The notes under the pieces were generated by a model. The model made no database searches and was not told the DNA's origin. It saw nothing but the letters and a program-made list of their open reading frames with translations. Shown here one piece after another: positions 1,405-55,391 of a stretch of DNA of 64,000 nucleotides. Position 1 is the first letter of the stretch. Every line of letters begins with the position of its first letter. The translations under genes were made by a program, and so were the position numbers. Location: the IMG/VR virus record IMGVR_UViG_3300034072_000926, positions 1 through 64,000 of that record. One strand, 5' to 3'.

Positions 1405-1462
1405 TGTGCTCTCCTGTTCTTAGTGTTTCCACTATACAGAAACAGGTGAACAAAGTCTATAT

Positions 1463-1538
1463 TGGAGCGGGTAGCGGGAATCGAACCCGCCTCGGTGACA
1501 TGGCAAGCCACTGTAATCAACCAATATACTATACCCGC
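1463..1538 (-). tRNA. tRNA-Gly(GCC)
   Basis: Anticodon arm GTGGC-TTGCCAT-GTCAC, CCA encoded. Confidence 0.9.
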
Positions 1539-1545
1539 ATGTTCA

Positions 1546-1827
1546 ATCTTGAGGTCCGTAGCCGCGATCCTGTTCTATGCTACAATCTACCTACCCGGAC
1601 TTGCGTGTCCAAGTGCCTCGCCATTACGCGAAAAGAGGCTTACTGCCCCTCGGCTGCACCAACCCGACCCTATAACTGGAGAATTGCCAGGGTCTGTTTG
1701 GCTTGCTGGCTTAATCACGGTGGTCTCTTCCCTTATGCGAGGTGTTAACCTGCTCCCACTCGTTCTCCACGCCAGTCGCGAACTTCCTCAAAGCATTTCT
1801 GCCCTGCTGTAGCTCGACCGTCAAGAT
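1546..1827 (-). ncRNA. rnpB: RNase P RNA-like gene (bacterial type, reduced S-domain)
   Basis: P1 AUCUUGA(C)GGUC/GACCUCAAGAU; P2 GCUACA/UGUAGC; P3 hairpin; CR-I GAGGAAGUUCGCG pairs with CR-V AACAGGAUCGCGGCUAC (P4 with bulged U); P5 CUGG/CCAG then CAAG; P15 GCCAA/UUGGU with L15 GGU; P18. Confidence 0.85.
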
Positions 1828-1901
1828 TGGTAGGCCCTAAGTGAATCGAACACTTGTCAATCCCTAATCAGGGGACCGCATTACCACTATGCTAAGAGCC
1901 T
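1828..1901 (-). tRNA. tRNA-Ile(GAT), atypical U37
   Basis: Acceptor AGGCTCT/AGGGCCT, loop CTGATTA, CCA encoded. Confidence 0.85.
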
Positions 1902-1917
1902 ATAATCAACATTTTGT

Positions 1918-1992
1918 TGGAGCGGGCAAAGAGGATCGAACTCTCGACATCCACCTTGGCAAGGTGGCGCTCTACCGCTGAGCTATACCCGC
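1918..1992 (-). tRNA. tRNA-Gly(GCC)
   Basis: CCACC-TTGCCAA-GGTGG, CCA encoded. Confidence 0.92.
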
Positions 1993-2000
1993 ATATTGTT

Positions 2001-2035
2001 CCTCCATTATAGCGGAGGGTTAAACAACTTGTCAA
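2001..2035 (-). promoter_or_regulatory. sigma70-like promoter with -10 inside an inverted repeat
   Basis: TTGACA-18-TATAAT; CCTCC-GCTATAAT-GGAGG. Confidence 0.8.
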
Positions 2036-2041
2036 ATTGTT

Positions 2042-2116
2042 TGGGGTGACCGACGGGGTTCGAACCCGCGACTACGCCTTCACAGGGCGGAATGTTACCA
2101 CTACACCACGGTCACC
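2042..2116 (-). tRNA. tRNA-His(GTG)
   Basis: G-1:C73 8-bp acceptor, loop CTGTGAA, CCA. Confidence 0.93.
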
Positions 2117-2181
2117 ATGAAAAACTAGGCAGTTAGCTTCAATGCTCGTTACTGACGATTGACAGTCAGCACCTAGTTAGA

Positions 2182-2262
2182 ACTGAGTCCGGAGTCGAAC
2201 CGGCTACTTAGGCAGCGCCCCAATTACGTTATGGATTCCACTGGCCCGGCCAGCTACTCAGT
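2182..2262 (-). ncRNA. tRNA-like RNA with non-canonical anticodon region
   Basis: 7-bp acceptor ACTGAGT/ACTCAGT, T-arm CCGG-TTCGACT-CCGG, 6-bp D-like stem, no canonical anticodon loop. Confidence 0.55.
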
Positions 2263-52806: not shown

Positions 52807-52807
52807 A

Positions 52808-53104
52808 ATGAAAGTAGCATATAACTTCCTACCTGATTACCAATTCCCTCATTGGATAGATCACAGCACAACACCTGCTAGTGACAACCTCACTCACTTC
52901 ATGAATGTCAACGAATGGTGCGGCAAGCAATTCGGGGACCTTGGTGTGAATTGGGGTTATGAGCGCAAGACTGATACCTCATCTGCGCCGAACGGGATGA
53001 ACCCTGTCAGGGTGCGTCTGCATTATACCACAATTCATTACAGCTGGCGTTTCAAGAACAAGGAAGATGCTGCTTTGTTCAAACTCACGTGGGGTGGCGC
53101 GTGA
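52808..53104 (+). CDS. FKLxWGG-family small protein
   Basis: Ends DAALFKLTWGGA. Confidence 0.8.
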   Translation: MKVAYNFLPDYQFPHWIDHSTTPASDNLTHFMNVNEWCGKQFGDLGVNWGYERKTDTSSAPNGMNPVRVRLHYTTIHYSWRFKNKEDAALFKLTWGGA

Positions 53105-53403
53105 AGCTTACAGAATACGAAACAGTCTCGATCTATGTTCCAGAGAGTCGACGACTAGGCTCGGGTAGCGGACAGAGCTTTAAGCTCAACCCTGACCTTA
53201 TTGAATGGGCTGATATGATGTACGGCTACAAGGCTCCCGACATGACTTACTTCGTTGCCAACCTTGACAATGATGCTTATGGTTGGGCGCATGGTGGTAT
53301 GGCAGCTAGTCCTAATCCTCTCGATAATCGCCTCTATCGCAAGTTCATGTTCAAGAAGGAATCTGATGCCTTGATGTTCAAATTGACATGGGGTGGCAAT
53401 TGA
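53101..53403 (+). CDS. FKLxWGG-family small protein
   Basis: Ends DALMFKLTWGGN. Confidence 0.8.
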   Translation: MKLTEYETVSIYVPESRRLGSGSGQSFKLNPDLIEWADMMYGYKAPDMTYFVANLDNDAYGWAHGGMAASPNPLDNRLYRKFMFKKESDALMFKLTWGGN

Positions 53404-53684
53404 GTGGATATCAGATCAGGTTCAATATCGAGGACATCTACGAGATTCAAGAACATTTCGGCTTAACGTGGGAATGTCTGACCGTCGGAATGCGTCGAGA
53501 GCATGAAAAGGAATGGATATTAAATCTCACCAGAGTTATTGACGCGTTAACTCAATGGTGTAAGGATAACGGTATAAGGCAATACTGGTTTGGCTACACT
53601 CAGATCGAATTGTGCGTAACCTTTCAAGAGAAGAAGGACGCGATGCTATTCAAGTTGAGGTGGCATAATGGTAAGAGAAGTTGA
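53400..53684 (+). CDS. FKLxWGG-family small protein
   Basis: DAMLFKLRW near C-terminus. Confidence 0.75.
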   Translation: MSGYQIRFNIEDIYEIQEHFGLTWECLTVGMRREHEKEWILNLTRVIDALTQWCKDNGIRQYWFGYTQIELCVTFQEKKDAMLFKLRWHNGKRS

Positions 53685-53871
53685 GACAGGATATGTGGGA
53701 TTCAACCCACCAGTCTATCACAAGTCTGATCGGTATTATCGAATTTGGGAGATCATTGACGAAATGAATCTCCGTCGTACGGTTGCCTTCATGTATCAAG
53801 GCAATATGGAATTGGTAGGGCTAGGCTTCCCTACGAAACAAGAAGCAATGATTTTCAGGTTGAAACTATAA
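53668..53871 (+). CDS. FKLxWGG-family small protein (divergent)
   Basis: Ends EAMIFRLKL. Confidence 0.7.
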   Translation: MVREVETGYVGFNPPVYHKSDRYYRIWEIIDEMNLRRTVAFMYQGNMELVGLGFPTKQEAMIFRLKL

Positions 53872-54122
53872 TGGGAACAGTTCACAGAAACGGCATACCG
53901 CCCAAGCGTCTTCCTTTCAAGAAGGTCCAAACCTATTCCGATATGGAGTTCAATGAAGAACTCATCACGAAATGGGCAAGGGAACAACTGGAGAACCACA
54001 TGCAATATGACATCGTGGTCTTCAATGGCACGAAAGGGAAGCTCAACCGTTCTATTGAGTTCACAGCCTGGTTTCAGACTAAGATTGATGCTGAACGCTT
54101 CCAGAAGAAATGGATGAAGTGA
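53871..54122 (+). CDS. FKLxWGG-family small protein (divergent)
   Basis: Ends DAERFQKKWMK. Confidence 0.7.
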   Translation: MGTVHRNGIPPKRLPFKKVQTYSDMEFNEELITKWAREQLENHMQYDIVVFNGTKGKLNRSIEFTAWFQTKIDAERFQKKWMK

Positions 54123-54415
54123 ACAATCAGATCTACATTGTTGATCGCGTGGATCAGGTCAAGTGGTATATCGACGAAGAGACTGCGATGACCTTCTGTC
54201 TACAGATGGATAAGAATCATCGAGTCATCCGAAACTGGCTAATGGAAATGACCTCCAACACCGTGGTCATAAGTGGTCAGGGCGTCATGCCTCGTATGGG
54301 ATCGAGTGATCATCCCAACAATGTCTACCAATCCATTTCCCGTGACCAATTCAAACTCTATTTCGCAGACGCAGACGATGCAATGCTGTTCAAACTAACT
54401 TGGGGTGGCGAATGA
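54110..54415 (+). CDS. FKLxWGG-family small protein
   Basis: Ends DAMLFKLTWGGE. Confidence 0.8.
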   Translation: MDEVNNQIYIVDRVDQVKWYIDEETAMTFCLQMDKNHRVIRNWLMEMTSNTVVISGQGVMPRMGSSDHPNNVYQSISRDQFKLYFADADDAMLFKLTWGGE

Positions 54416-54594
54416 CCACGTGCAAACTCTACAAGGCTTATCTCCTTAGCGATCGTGTCGAGGGTCCTAATATTCTGACTTTCTATGCCTACCACATGAG
54501 TGAGAAAGCAGCCAAGCAGGCTGCTATTCGTTGGGCTCAAGGTCAACATCCTGGCGCAAGCATCACCCTCGATAAAGTTGACTTGCTCTCATAA
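54412..54594 (+). CDS. hypothetical protein
   Basis: ATGA overlap; lacks the family motif. Confidence 0.6.
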   Translation: MTTCKLYKAYLLSDRVEGPNILTFYAYHMSEKAAKQAAIRWAQGQHPGASITLDKVDLLS

Positions 54595-54611
54595 CTCACT
54601 ATTATGGGCTT

Positions 54612-54968
54612 ATGAAAATAAGCTTCTGTCCTTGGCGTTCCCTGTCGCACCCTTACAGGGTCCAGTGGGGCTCTGTCTATGATTTAGTAACGCAGCAAAG
54701 CTCTGGTCCTAGAAGTTCTGAGGACTTCGCTCTGCGCGCCGCATGGGTTATTCGTTCTGAGGTTCTCAAATACATCGAAGAGTTACCTGATAGGAAATTC
54801 TTGTTCTTCTTTAAGATCAAGCCTATGGCGGCTGTGGCTTGTCAAGAGGCACGGTATATCGCAGGTCGTGCTGGACGAGTAACAGCCTTCCCTATACCTA
54901 AGCCTTTAATGTTCGCTCGCAAGAGTGACATTATGATGTTTAAGCTTCGTTTCGGCGGTCGTCTGTAA
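54612..54968 (+). CDS. FKLxWGG-family small protein
   Basis: Ends DIMMFKLRFGGRL. Confidence 0.75.
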   Translation: MKISFCPWRSLSHPYRVQWGSVYDLVTQQSSGPRSSEDFALRAAWVIRSEVLKYIEELPDRKFLFFFKIKPMAAVACQEARYIAGRAGRVTAFPIPKPLMFARKSDIMMFKLRFGGRL

Positions 54969-55333
54969 TGGAATTGTCTGCTAGGGGATTACCGTCGCTT
55001 CGCATTACTCAGGGATACCATGTCGTGATTCGTGCCCCTGATTATCCAGGCTTACTTCCGCATCAAGAACGTTTCAAACATGGGTTCACAAATGAACTCA
55101 AAGATTGGCTCTTAGAGCATGTGGGTCAACCTGCGACAAATCTCACATGGGAAAATGGCGAGGGCGATTGGATTCATACTGGCTGCCGTCAAGGCAAAGT
55201 AGAATGGGTTAATGCCCATACCCCTTCGGTCATCAACAGCATGGACTTCTATTTTAGAGACCGGCGTCGAGCGAGACGTTTCAAGATAGTCTGGGAACGC
55301 TATTTTGAGATAGCACTGGGACCTTTCACCTAA
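54968..55333 (+). CDS. FKLxWGG-family small protein (divergent)
   Basis: FYF....RARRFKIVW. Confidence 0.7.
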   Translation: MELSARGLPSLRITQGYHVVIRAPDYPGLLPHQERFKHGFTNELKDWLLEHVGQPATNLTWENGEGDWIHTGCRQGKVEWVNAHTPSVINSMDFYFRDRRRARRFKIVWERYFEIALGPFT

Positions 55334-55391
55334 ATTATTGACGCGCTTCTGGTGTGCTAAGTAAAATGCACATAGAAATCAGAGGCCATCA

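Follow-up and report, generated by a model that had tools for sequence, protein, structure and literature searches.

In bacteriophage T4, the genes e, soc, 49 and I-TevI, and likewise mobE of phage Aeh1, have their Shine-Dalgarno (SD) sequence or AUG start codon sequestered in a hairpin on early read-through RNA (PMC3014915). In the T4 cases, a promoter lying inside the region coding for the hairpin's 5' strand yields transcripts in which the ribosome-binding site (RBS) is open (PMC3014915). A second precedent is provided by the promoter-early stem-loops (PeSLs) of T4-like phages, repeated cassettes of a promoter and a stem-loop that are known from RB49, where they were first described, and phi1, as well as from T4/PST and KVP40/nt-1, and that have been read as terminators and as recombination sites, with mini-circles as the recombination product (PMC2839356, PMC4122927). 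Here we consider a hairpin element associated with sigma70-like promoters in a 64,000-nt stretch of viral DNA, positions 1 to 64,000 of the IMG/VR record IMGVR_UViG_3300034072_000926, which we refer to as the window. A preliminary description of this DNA had reported inverted repeats with the -10 box in or beside the loop at at least 12 such promoters, in a list of 13 sites; it was correct on the hairpin blocking of T4 e, soc and I-TevI (PMC3014915) and omitted the PeSLs of RB49 and phi1, the closest precedent at the level of the cassette. We find that the element is a relative of the PeSL cassette in which the 3' arm is placed differently, and that it is best explained as an RNA-level device within a repeated promoter-plus-leader cassette.

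The window forms the start of one 465,259-bp contig of 49% GC and encodes topoisomerase II subunits of the T4 type. The closest named relative by protein search is Sinorhizobium phage Phosso (469 kb), with a topoisomerase 71% identical, followed by Agrobacterium phage Atu_ph07 (490 kb), with 61% identity, and close homologues of one window gene are present on numerous metagenomic contigs of large size, which reach 300-570 kb and more. From these relationships the genome therefore belongs to a jumbo phage in the group of Atu_ph07 and Phosso, with a rhizobial alphaproteobacterium as the probable host. The named relatives came from the protein search, a megablast with a 2.6-kb gene against phage records having given no match; similarly, a related-locus search with a 249-residue protein in viral and metagenome contigs found no relatives, and a search for homologous proteins then supplied the contigs that encode them. 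The papers on Atu_ph07 and on the Sinorhizobium jumbo phage AP-J-162 make no mention of promoters, hairpins or terminators.

This genome has a large excess of perfect inverted repeats whose loops measure 3-30 nt. With the expectation taken from 10 first-order Markov simulations, 142 repeats have stems of at least 10 bp where about 11.6 are expected (roughly 12-fold); 58 of these are 10-bp stems (9.5 expected), 44 are 11-bp stems (1.6 expected) and 40 are at least 12 bp long (about 0.5 expected). The window alone holds 31 repeats with stems of at least 9 bp against about 6 expected, and 18 with at least 10 bp against about 1.6. By eye, these repeats fall into two classes. The first consists of canonical terminators, with a GC-rich stem, a tetraloop (TTTC, GAAA) and a T run, often located just upstream of the next TTGAC. 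The second consists of promoter hairpins, found 0-15 nt past the upstream stop codon, in which the left arm begins within a few bases of a gGTTGAC -35 element and lies in the spacer, a loop of 7-26 nt holds an extended -10 (TGnTAnnnT), and the right arm lies at or beside the SD, with the start codon next. Perfect stems of 11-16 bp exist among them. The promoter consensus, ggTTGAC-N16-18-TGnTAnnnT, is sigma70-like, and GGTTGAC is concentrated in non-coding DNA, which makes up 15% of the genome and holds 63 of the 128 copies. Many of the arms share a core, CTCCTGTT/AACAGGAG, because the leaders have a conserved aACAGGAGATCGAAC-ATG; the earlier impression that the arm sequences are unrelated to each other was thus only partly right. 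About 35 near-identical promoter-leader cassettes, almost one per small gene, are packed into 50 kb of the minus strand (about 352,000-402,000 of the genome) in the pattern ggTTGAC-N16-TAnnnT ... aACAGGAGATCGAAC-ATG, an arrangement that we liken to the hyperplastic regions of T4-like phages.

We quantified the association with promoters using genes called by a simple codon-bias script and promoters called by simple scripts of our own. To count as strict, a promoter had to have TTGAC and TAnnnT separated by 15-19 nt, and a start codon with an SD ahead of it at 14-60 nt past the -10; the sequence between the -35 and the start codon was folded, and its minimum free energy (MFE) was expressed as a z-score against dinucleotide shuffles. 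Transcription start sites (TSSs) were predicted from the -10 hexamers, and the same pipeline was applied to Phosso, Atu_ph07 and RB49. The 53 strict promoters of the present genome have a mean z of -2.1 to -2.3, and 45-51% of them fall below -2, compared with 6.6% of shuffled sequences treated in the same way; perfect stems of 7-13 bp occur at 14 of the 53. The hairpin is therefore frequent at promoters, yet not universal, and the observation made in the preliminary description is largely confirmed. The fraction with z below -2 is 49-53% among 74 promoters in Phosso, 29% among 85 in Atu_ph07 and 56% among 48 in RB49. A strict promoter scan of seven 20-kb related loci yielded 15 promoters, too few to have any power.

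The geometry of the fold distinguishes this clade from RB49. When only the part upstream of the predicted TSS is folded, z is -0.3 in the present genome, -0.4 in Phosso and -0.1 in Atu_ph07, compared with -1.8 in RB49; the upstream part is essentially unstructured in the clade, and the structure therefore needs the leader. In the present genome the hairpin starts at a median of 15 nt before the -10 and its 3' end lies at a median of 5 nt before the start codon and +16 from the TSS. The corresponding 3' ends are at 4 nt and +14 in Phosso and at 0 nt and +21 in Atu_ph07, where the arms often span from the -10 to the AUG, and at 25 nt and -1 in RB49. The -10 lies in the loop or in the left arm, the predicted TSS falls between the arms, and pairing frequency is maximal, at 0.74-0.77, at positions -11 to -9. 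Of the contiguous stems of at least 8 bp, 46% have a right arm that overlaps the core of the SD, compared with 26% for uniform placement between the -10 and +30 (p = 2e-5); for stems of at least 9 bp the overlap is 54% against 29% expected, and for RB49 it is 0 of 11. The SD or start codon is thus enclosed in the helix at roughly one hairpin in two.

The present cassettes and the PeSLs are alike in being intergenic repeats with a strong sigma70-like promoter, a stem-loop containing G:U pairs and a 3' SD plus ATG, and in flanking small open reading frames (ORFs) in arrays. They differ in that the RB49 stem-loop sits inside the spacer or tight around the -10 (e.g. GTTGACAGGGGATCGGTGATCCCCTATAAT) and ends at the TSS, never at the SD, whereas the structure of this clade ends 0-5 nt before the start codon; PeSL geometry is found here only in a minority of sites, at 606-626, 24005-24031 and 45046-45079. 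This comparison bears on the possibility that the hairpins are attenuators or terminators of PeSL type, which would stop or attenuate incoming transcription and leave each gene as its own unit, SD coverage being a by-product of short leaders. The promoter-embedded stem-loops of RB49 and phi1 lower expression of a downstream lacZ about as much as rrnB T1 does (PMC2839356), and an attenuator would predict the same sense-strand signature and the same restriction to co-directional genes that we describe below; it would also account for the hairpins that lie off the SD and for those ahead of tRNA genes. Like intrinsic terminators, the hairpins are encoded just downstream of a gene, but they have long loops (typically 14-26 nt in the present genome), moderate GC content, no U tract and a promoter inside, and the genome has its own separate, canonical terminators, with a tetraloop and a T run, upstream of the -35. 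At least five T residues in the 8 nt after the hairpin are found at only 0-3% of structured promoters in the present genome and Phosso. The distance of the 3' end from the start codon and the placement of the right arm on the SD, above uniform expectation here and never in RB49, also speak against attenuation. In addition, RNA-library contigs identical to the window cross two of the junctions, at 22356-22595 and 24624-24810, a weak indication in that the libraries may hold carried-over DNA. Taken together, we consider attenuation unlikely as the explanation of the element, although it is probably correct at least for the tight hairpins.

Whether the structure acts as RNA or as DNA can be read from its mismatches. 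We folded the sequences with G:U pairing forbidden, so that hairpins were selected in a strand-symmetric way, and read the interior 1x1 mismatches in the orientation of the downstream gene. The count of G:U to A:C was 11 to 2 in the present genome, 13 to 2 in Phosso and 9 to 2 in Atu_ph07, or 33 to 6 together, while the null fraction of G:U, obtained by shuffling spacers and leaders separately, is 0.51 (p = 1.5e-5). These Watson-Crick-only folds replaced an earlier count on perfect cores of at least 6 bp near rough gene starts, which gave 7 cases and was uninformative. We do not treat the difference between sense and antisense MFE as main evidence, since base composition accounts for part of it (-1.85 in the real sequences, -0.96 in shuffles) and the structured subset, having been picked on sense folding, is biased. 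An alignment (A1) of the hairpin at 24005-24031 in eight genomes shows compensatory changes at five pairs, and every one-sided change that preserves pairing is to G:U. The G:U excess and this alignment pattern together argue that the structure is selected in the sense-strand RNA.

The same data weigh on a DNA-level role, which the preliminary description had offered as one of two readings: a cruciform, or a single-stranded hairpin of the kind used by N4, recognised by a polymerase or other protein. N4 vRNAP uses hairpin promoters, which are conserved in sequence, formed in DNA and short, with loops of 3 nt. The present elements resemble them in that a hairpin overlaps the promoter, with the -10 in or beside the loop, but the signature here is at the RNA level and strand-specific, and the arms are free in sequence and register. 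The promoters also have a good -35 and an extended -10 for host sigma70, structure is at the null level at divergent promoters (see below), and loops of 7-26 nt disfavour cruciform extrusion. Strand asymmetry, context dependence and loop length lead us to reject the DNA-level reading, to which we attach hardly any probability.

A different concern is that the complementarity has no function of its own and follows from a conserved, recombining cassette in which a pyrimidine-rich, anti-SD-like spacer (CTCCT, CACCT, TTCCT) faces a purine-rich leader with the common aACAGGAGATCGAAC-ATG. Cassettes are indeed highly alike over dozens of genes, and duplexes between spacers and leaders of different genes are already stable, at -9.2 kcal/mol. 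Native spacer-leader duplexes are nevertheless more stable than these chimeras, at -12.0 kcal/mol (p = 4e-4), and the same is true in Phosso (-10.8 native, -8.6 chimeric, p = 1e-4); in the present genome 28% of native pairs are within the best 5% of their own chimeras. The complementarity is thus partly gene-specific. Counts of SD pairing in MFE folds are barely lowered by shuffling the spacer (58% versus 65% observed), a statistic made insensitive by the pyrimidine and purine composition of the two strands. The by-product explanation also has to contend with the 33-to-6 preponderance of G:U over A:C, with the perfect stems of 11-16 bp, with orthologues whose arms differ while pairing is kept, and with the absence of structure at divergent promoters of the same sequence type, and we regard it as quite improbable.

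The orthologues of the gene at 22458 illustrate arms that differ while pairing is kept. In the type example, at 22459-22498 on the minus strand, the -35 TTGACA (22505-22500) is followed by a left arm, GGGTTCTCCTTCC, that fills the spacer; the loop contains a -10-like TATCTA, and the right arm of this 13-bp stem, GGAAGGAGAACCC, is the SD and adjoins the ATG at 22458. Five of seven related contigs keep stems of 10-15 bp with arms of different sequence. Among the orthologues, the arms GGGTTCTCCTTCC, TTGGTTTCCTGG, TCCTTTTGTT, CTATCTCCTGAGTGT and TACTGGAGCC form stems of 13, 12, 10, 15 and 10 bp and are unrelated to one another. The one orthologue that lacks the promoter also lacks the hairpin.

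Structure varies with what lies upstream. Over the three genomes of the clade, 48% of promoters located behind a co-directional gene have z below -2 (n = 178, mean -2.0), rising to 55% where that gene ends no more than 60 nt away, whereas only 2 of 34 promoters (6%) with an upstream neighbour on the other strand do so, their mean z of -0.33 being at the null level (Fisher p = 9e-7; this comparison relies on our own crude gene and promoter predictions). That the hairpins track the direction of the neighbouring gene fits an action on read-through RNA rather than promoter recognition. It would also fit an RNA processing or stability element, serving as a cleavage mark or as a protective 3' end for the upstream mRNA once a polycistron is processed. 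Such an element would be a sense-strand RNA structure present only where the upstream gene is co-transcribed, its position 0-15 nt past the upstream stop codon would be appropriate, and intergenic hairpins have processing and stability roles in T7 and T4. However, RNase III would be expected to need longer stems than these, which measure 8-15 bp, our analysis linked no nuclease to the element, and processing leaves unexplained why the 3' arm should be the SD instead of part of a compact hairpin. We consider this explanation improbable.

The reading that we favour, and hold to be somewhat probable, is that PeSL-like promoter cassettes have incorporated a masking device of the T4 e/soc type, which hides the ribosome site when a transcript reads through from upstream. 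The 5' arm is encoded by the promoter spacer (in Atu_ph07, by the -10 itself) and the 3' arm by the short leader, usually on the SD and sometimes on the start codon. A transcript from the gene's own promoter would start inside the loop and lack the 5' arm, so that its ribosome site is open, while a read-through transcript from a co-directional upstream gene would carry both arms and have the site masked. Translation of each gene would thus draw mainly on transcripts of its own promoter, insulating its dosage and timing from upstream transcription, as has been demonstrated for T4 genes e, soc, 49 and I-TevI. We infer the existence and amount of read-through, the TSS positions and the block to translation as parts of this model. 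The predicted cost of opening the RBS (positions -14 to +3) is 9.3 kcal/mol in the read-through context and 4.5 in the gene's own transcript. Of the two readings given in the preliminary description, it is thus translational insulation that gains support: spacer and leader are both needed for structure (z -2.1, compared with -0.3 for the upstream part), the hairpin ends at a median of 5 nt before the start codon, G:U pairing is sense-only, and the structure is confined largely to co-directional contexts. As in the T4 hairpins, the SD or AUG is paired within a helix, and the DNA for the 5' strand of that helix is at the promoter or upstream of it. T4 uses the device, however, at a handful of genes with late promoters, where it delays expression, whereas the present phages have dozens of sites per genome, with an inferred function, mainly at sigma70-like -35/-10 promoters whose spacer is filled by the 5' arm, in a conserved cassette found across a clade of 465-490-kb phages.

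Several observations weigh against masking. Opening the RBS in the read-through context costs only modestly more than it does at other genes (9.3 versus 8.0 kcal/mol, p = 0.036), and among the long stems about one in two leaves the SD core untouched. Leaders are only about 28 nt long, and any hairpin that spans the -10 will end near the SD by geometry alone; for long leaders, an RNAduplex placement test found no SD targeting (17 of 30, 16 expected), by a crude and too lenient measure. The stability of chimeric spacer-leader pairs and the small effect of spacer shuffling, given above, count on the same side. There are also counter-examples without SD contact, namely 24005-24031, 45046-45079, 606-626 and the tRNA promoters, and the first of these is strongly conserved even though it lies 45 nt before the true start codon. 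A strict block would leave all downstream cistrons of a read-through RNA untranslated, which looks wasteful. Finally, all of the gene and promoter calls come from our own simple scripts.

Site by site, the evidence in the window is uneven. Seven of the 13 sites listed in the preliminary description fit fully, with a right arm that reaches the SD or start codon: those at 1413, 13922, 19730, 22459, 24697, 43569 and 55353. All but the last of these are on the minus strand. At 43567-43606 (listed as 43569-43604), the -35 TTGACA at 43615-43610 is followed by the arms ACCTCCTGTG/CACAGGAGGT, which form a perfect stem of 10 bp that lengthens to 16 bp if two G:U pairs are allowed; the SD is the right arm itself, 5 nt ahead of the ATG. 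The hairpin at 13922-13959 (-35 TTGACT, 13970-13965) has the -10 TACTTT in its loop and arms CCTGTTTCTGT/ACAGAAACAGG of 11-12 bp, the right arm extending into the SD of a conserved leader, AGGAGATCGAAC-TTG, and its fold has a z of -4.0. At 19730-19756 (-35 TTGACA, 19775-19770), the -10 TATAGG lies within the left arm, the stem is 9-11 bp, and the right arm CTATAAGGA contains the SD, with the ATG 7 nt downstream; at this junction the seven related contigs have neither a TTGAC promoter nor such a hairpin, so that here, as for the gene at 22458, no promoter at the orthologous junction means no hairpin. The gene for an HD-domain protein is preceded at 24697-24719 by a two-tier hairpin (-35 TTGACA, 24735-24730), in which the -10 region is flanked by an inner stem of 7-8 bp, CCTATGT/ACATAGG, while the SD, GGAGGTG, is covered by an outer helix, CACCT/AGGTG; orthologues in seven contigs keep hairpins with shifted registers and with G:U pairs. 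At 1413-1446, a TAGACT-N17-TATAGT promoter has arms CCTGTT(T)CT/AGAACAGG, the right arm running into the SD AGGAG of the gene at 724-1404. On the plus strand, the hairpin at 55345-55386 (listed as 55353-55372) lies ahead of a topoisomerase II subunit gene at a TTGACG-N18-TAAAAT promoter, with an inner stem of 5 bp, TGTGC/GCACA, an outer stem of 9 bp, GCTTCTGGT/ATCAGAGGC, over the SD, and a z of -3.3.

Three minus-strand hairpins were absent from that list. The right arm of the pair GTCACCTT/AAGGTGGC at 12583-12603 (-35 TTGACG at 12618) is the SD and adjoins the ATG at 12582. A long-range example at 32091-32153 has AATCTACC immediately after the -35 TTGACA (32158) and, across a loop of 47 nt, a partner arm, GGTAGATT, that stops 2 nt before the ATG. 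The third, a compact 8-bp ATAAGGAC/GTCCTTAT at 606-626 with PeSL-like geometry, belongs to a promoter ahead of tRNA-Cys, TTGACA-N17-TATAGC, and sits entirely in its spacer.

The remaining listed sites depart from the pattern in different ways. Those at 24005 and 45051 are real promoter hairpins without SD contact. At 24005-24031 (minus strand), the arms GAGCGTCCTT/AAGGATGCTC, with one G:U, are tight around the -10 of a TAGACA-N18-TAGAAA promoter; because the conserved start codon is at 23960, 45 nt downstream, this hairpin is not an SD mask, and the AAGGA of its arm is not the SD that the preliminary description had taken it to be. A second hairpin is conserved in the eight genomes in the leader of the same gene (23259-23960), at about 23966-23995 on the minus strand. 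It holds the SD (GGTGAGGCA) and a conserved GATCGAA, has one compensatory pair (C-G to U-A in L032), and would be present in the gene's own transcript too. The hairpin at 45046-45079 on the minus strand (listed as 45051-45074) is located between the -35, TTGACT at 45085-45080, and across the -10, which is TAGTGT, upstream of the IF-3 gene; its stem is 9 bp perfect, or 14 bp with G:U, it is PeSL-like with the SD in neither arm, and its z is -6.0.

At 36285-36329 (minus strand) there is likewise a real hairpin, a 10-bp ACCCTCCGCT/AGCGGAGGGT after TTGACA (36338), with no gene behind it: downstream we found no ORF and no Rfam family, and about 150 nt of non-coding sequence leads to a canonical terminator (GGGCG...CGCCC plus TTTCTTGT) near 36135-36165. 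The region at 36135-36338 (minus strand) is therefore a candidate for a non-coding transcript of about 150 nt, and the 214 nt downstream of the hairpin fold no better than shuffles (z -1.0).

Two of the listed sites are marginal. The one at 2001-2018 (minus strand) is a 5-bp CCTCC/GGAGG around the TATAAT of a tRNA-Gly promoter, which alone is at chance level, and the one at 5064-5080 is weak, with 3+3 bp and a bulge. The tRNA-Gly cassette (1992-2035, minus strand) retains the SD-like GGAGG and, at the usual spacing, an ATG whose G is base 1 of the tRNA; it looks like the outcome of a recombination event at the start codon that joined a protein-gene cassette to the tRNA, as would fit shuffling in the manner of PeSLs. 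The last listed site, 46405-46436 (minus strand), we reject as a promoter hairpin: with an 11-bp stem, a 10-nt loop and no -35, 11 nt past the stop codon of the gene at 46448-47803 and followed by TTT, it is terminator-like.

Hairpins at tRNA promoters, and the other compact ones around the -10, cannot mask an SD, and SD masking is therefore not the whole story. The preliminary description had argued that copies in front of RNA genes favour a DNA-level or termination role; the point about these compact hairpins was fair, although the DNA level is rejected. We suggest that the hairpins that hug the -10 without SD contact, those at tRNA promoters included, are probably PeSL-like attenuators or 3'-end structures for the upstream RNA. 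The tRNA genes themselves, 43 by prediction, are clustered on the minus strand at 447-10309; one has an undetermined anticodon (5839-5911), and several were found by ARAGORN and not by Rfam, whose scan of the window returned tRNAs only.

Among 8-mer families, the one with the greatest enrichment upstream of genes is nnTAAATA, a second promoter-like motif that is similar to the late promoters of T4. This motif occurs 12-54 nt ahead of 62 start codons, and 24% of these sites have z below -2. Examples in the window are at 28560, 17947, 46373, 25218 and 40081 on the minus strand and at 14632, 52748 and 60795 on the plus strand. At several genes the layout of T4 e and soc is closely copied, with the 5' arm overlapping the motif (e.g. 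GCTAAATAtcctgaacgtggAGGATATTATG), and we count this in favour of masking.

Other features of the window concern gene content and distribution. An IF-3 gene with both Pfam domains lies at 44500-45030, and bS21, ClpS and a ClpX-like ATPase are also phage-encoded (40637-40774, 34896-35189 and 45088-46338); all are on the minus strand, and the same genes are annotated in Phosso and Atu_ph07. IF-3 and bS21 both act at translation initiation and may bear on control at the RBS. Auxiliary genes on the minus strand include that for the HD-domain protein, which is (p)ppGpp hydrolase-like (24047-24685) and has 950 homologues at E < 1e-10, many on contigs of at least 100 kb, and those for a glutathionylspermidine synthase and an ADP-ribosylglycohydrolase (29062-30273 and 18814-19797). 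Short contigs identical or nearly identical to window positions 19001-25000 occur in four wastewater metatranscriptome runs; as read-length fragments at low depth, they are uninformative about TSSs. Window sequence also appears in DNA runs from subsurface and soil metagenomes, and part of it in one indoor metagenome run, and the phage or close strains of it are therefore widespread.

What is new here is the combination of the T4 principle with a PeSL-like cassette on sigma70-type promoters whose spacer is the anti-RBS strand, a combination that recurs dozens of times in each genome and throughout the clade. It is conceivable, though we would stop short of calling it probable, that this clade of 465-490-kb rhizobial jumbo phages builds most of its early genes and some of its late ones as promoter-gated translation units, in which the anti-RBS strand encoded by the spacer leaves a gene translatable only from RNA begun at its own promoter, and the gating may act together with the phage-encoded IF-3 and bS21. 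If so, the cassettes would be portable and independent of context, and early genes would be silenced on later read-through RNA. The PeSL concept is refined as well, in that the position of the stem-loop differs between related cassettes of separate T4-like lineages, and its consequences may differ too. Should the mechanism hold, it would explain the conservation of the spacer at these promoters and would offer a rule by which promoters, TSSs and the true start codons could be annotated in the genomes of huge phages, most of whose genes are unknown, as well as a compact, portable insulator part, a promoter with a self-masking RBS, for synthetic operons. The cultured relatives Phosso and Atu_ph07 make it directly testable. 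Masking of the RBS on read-through RNA would then be a possible default design of phage transcription units, extending beyond a few genes of T4.

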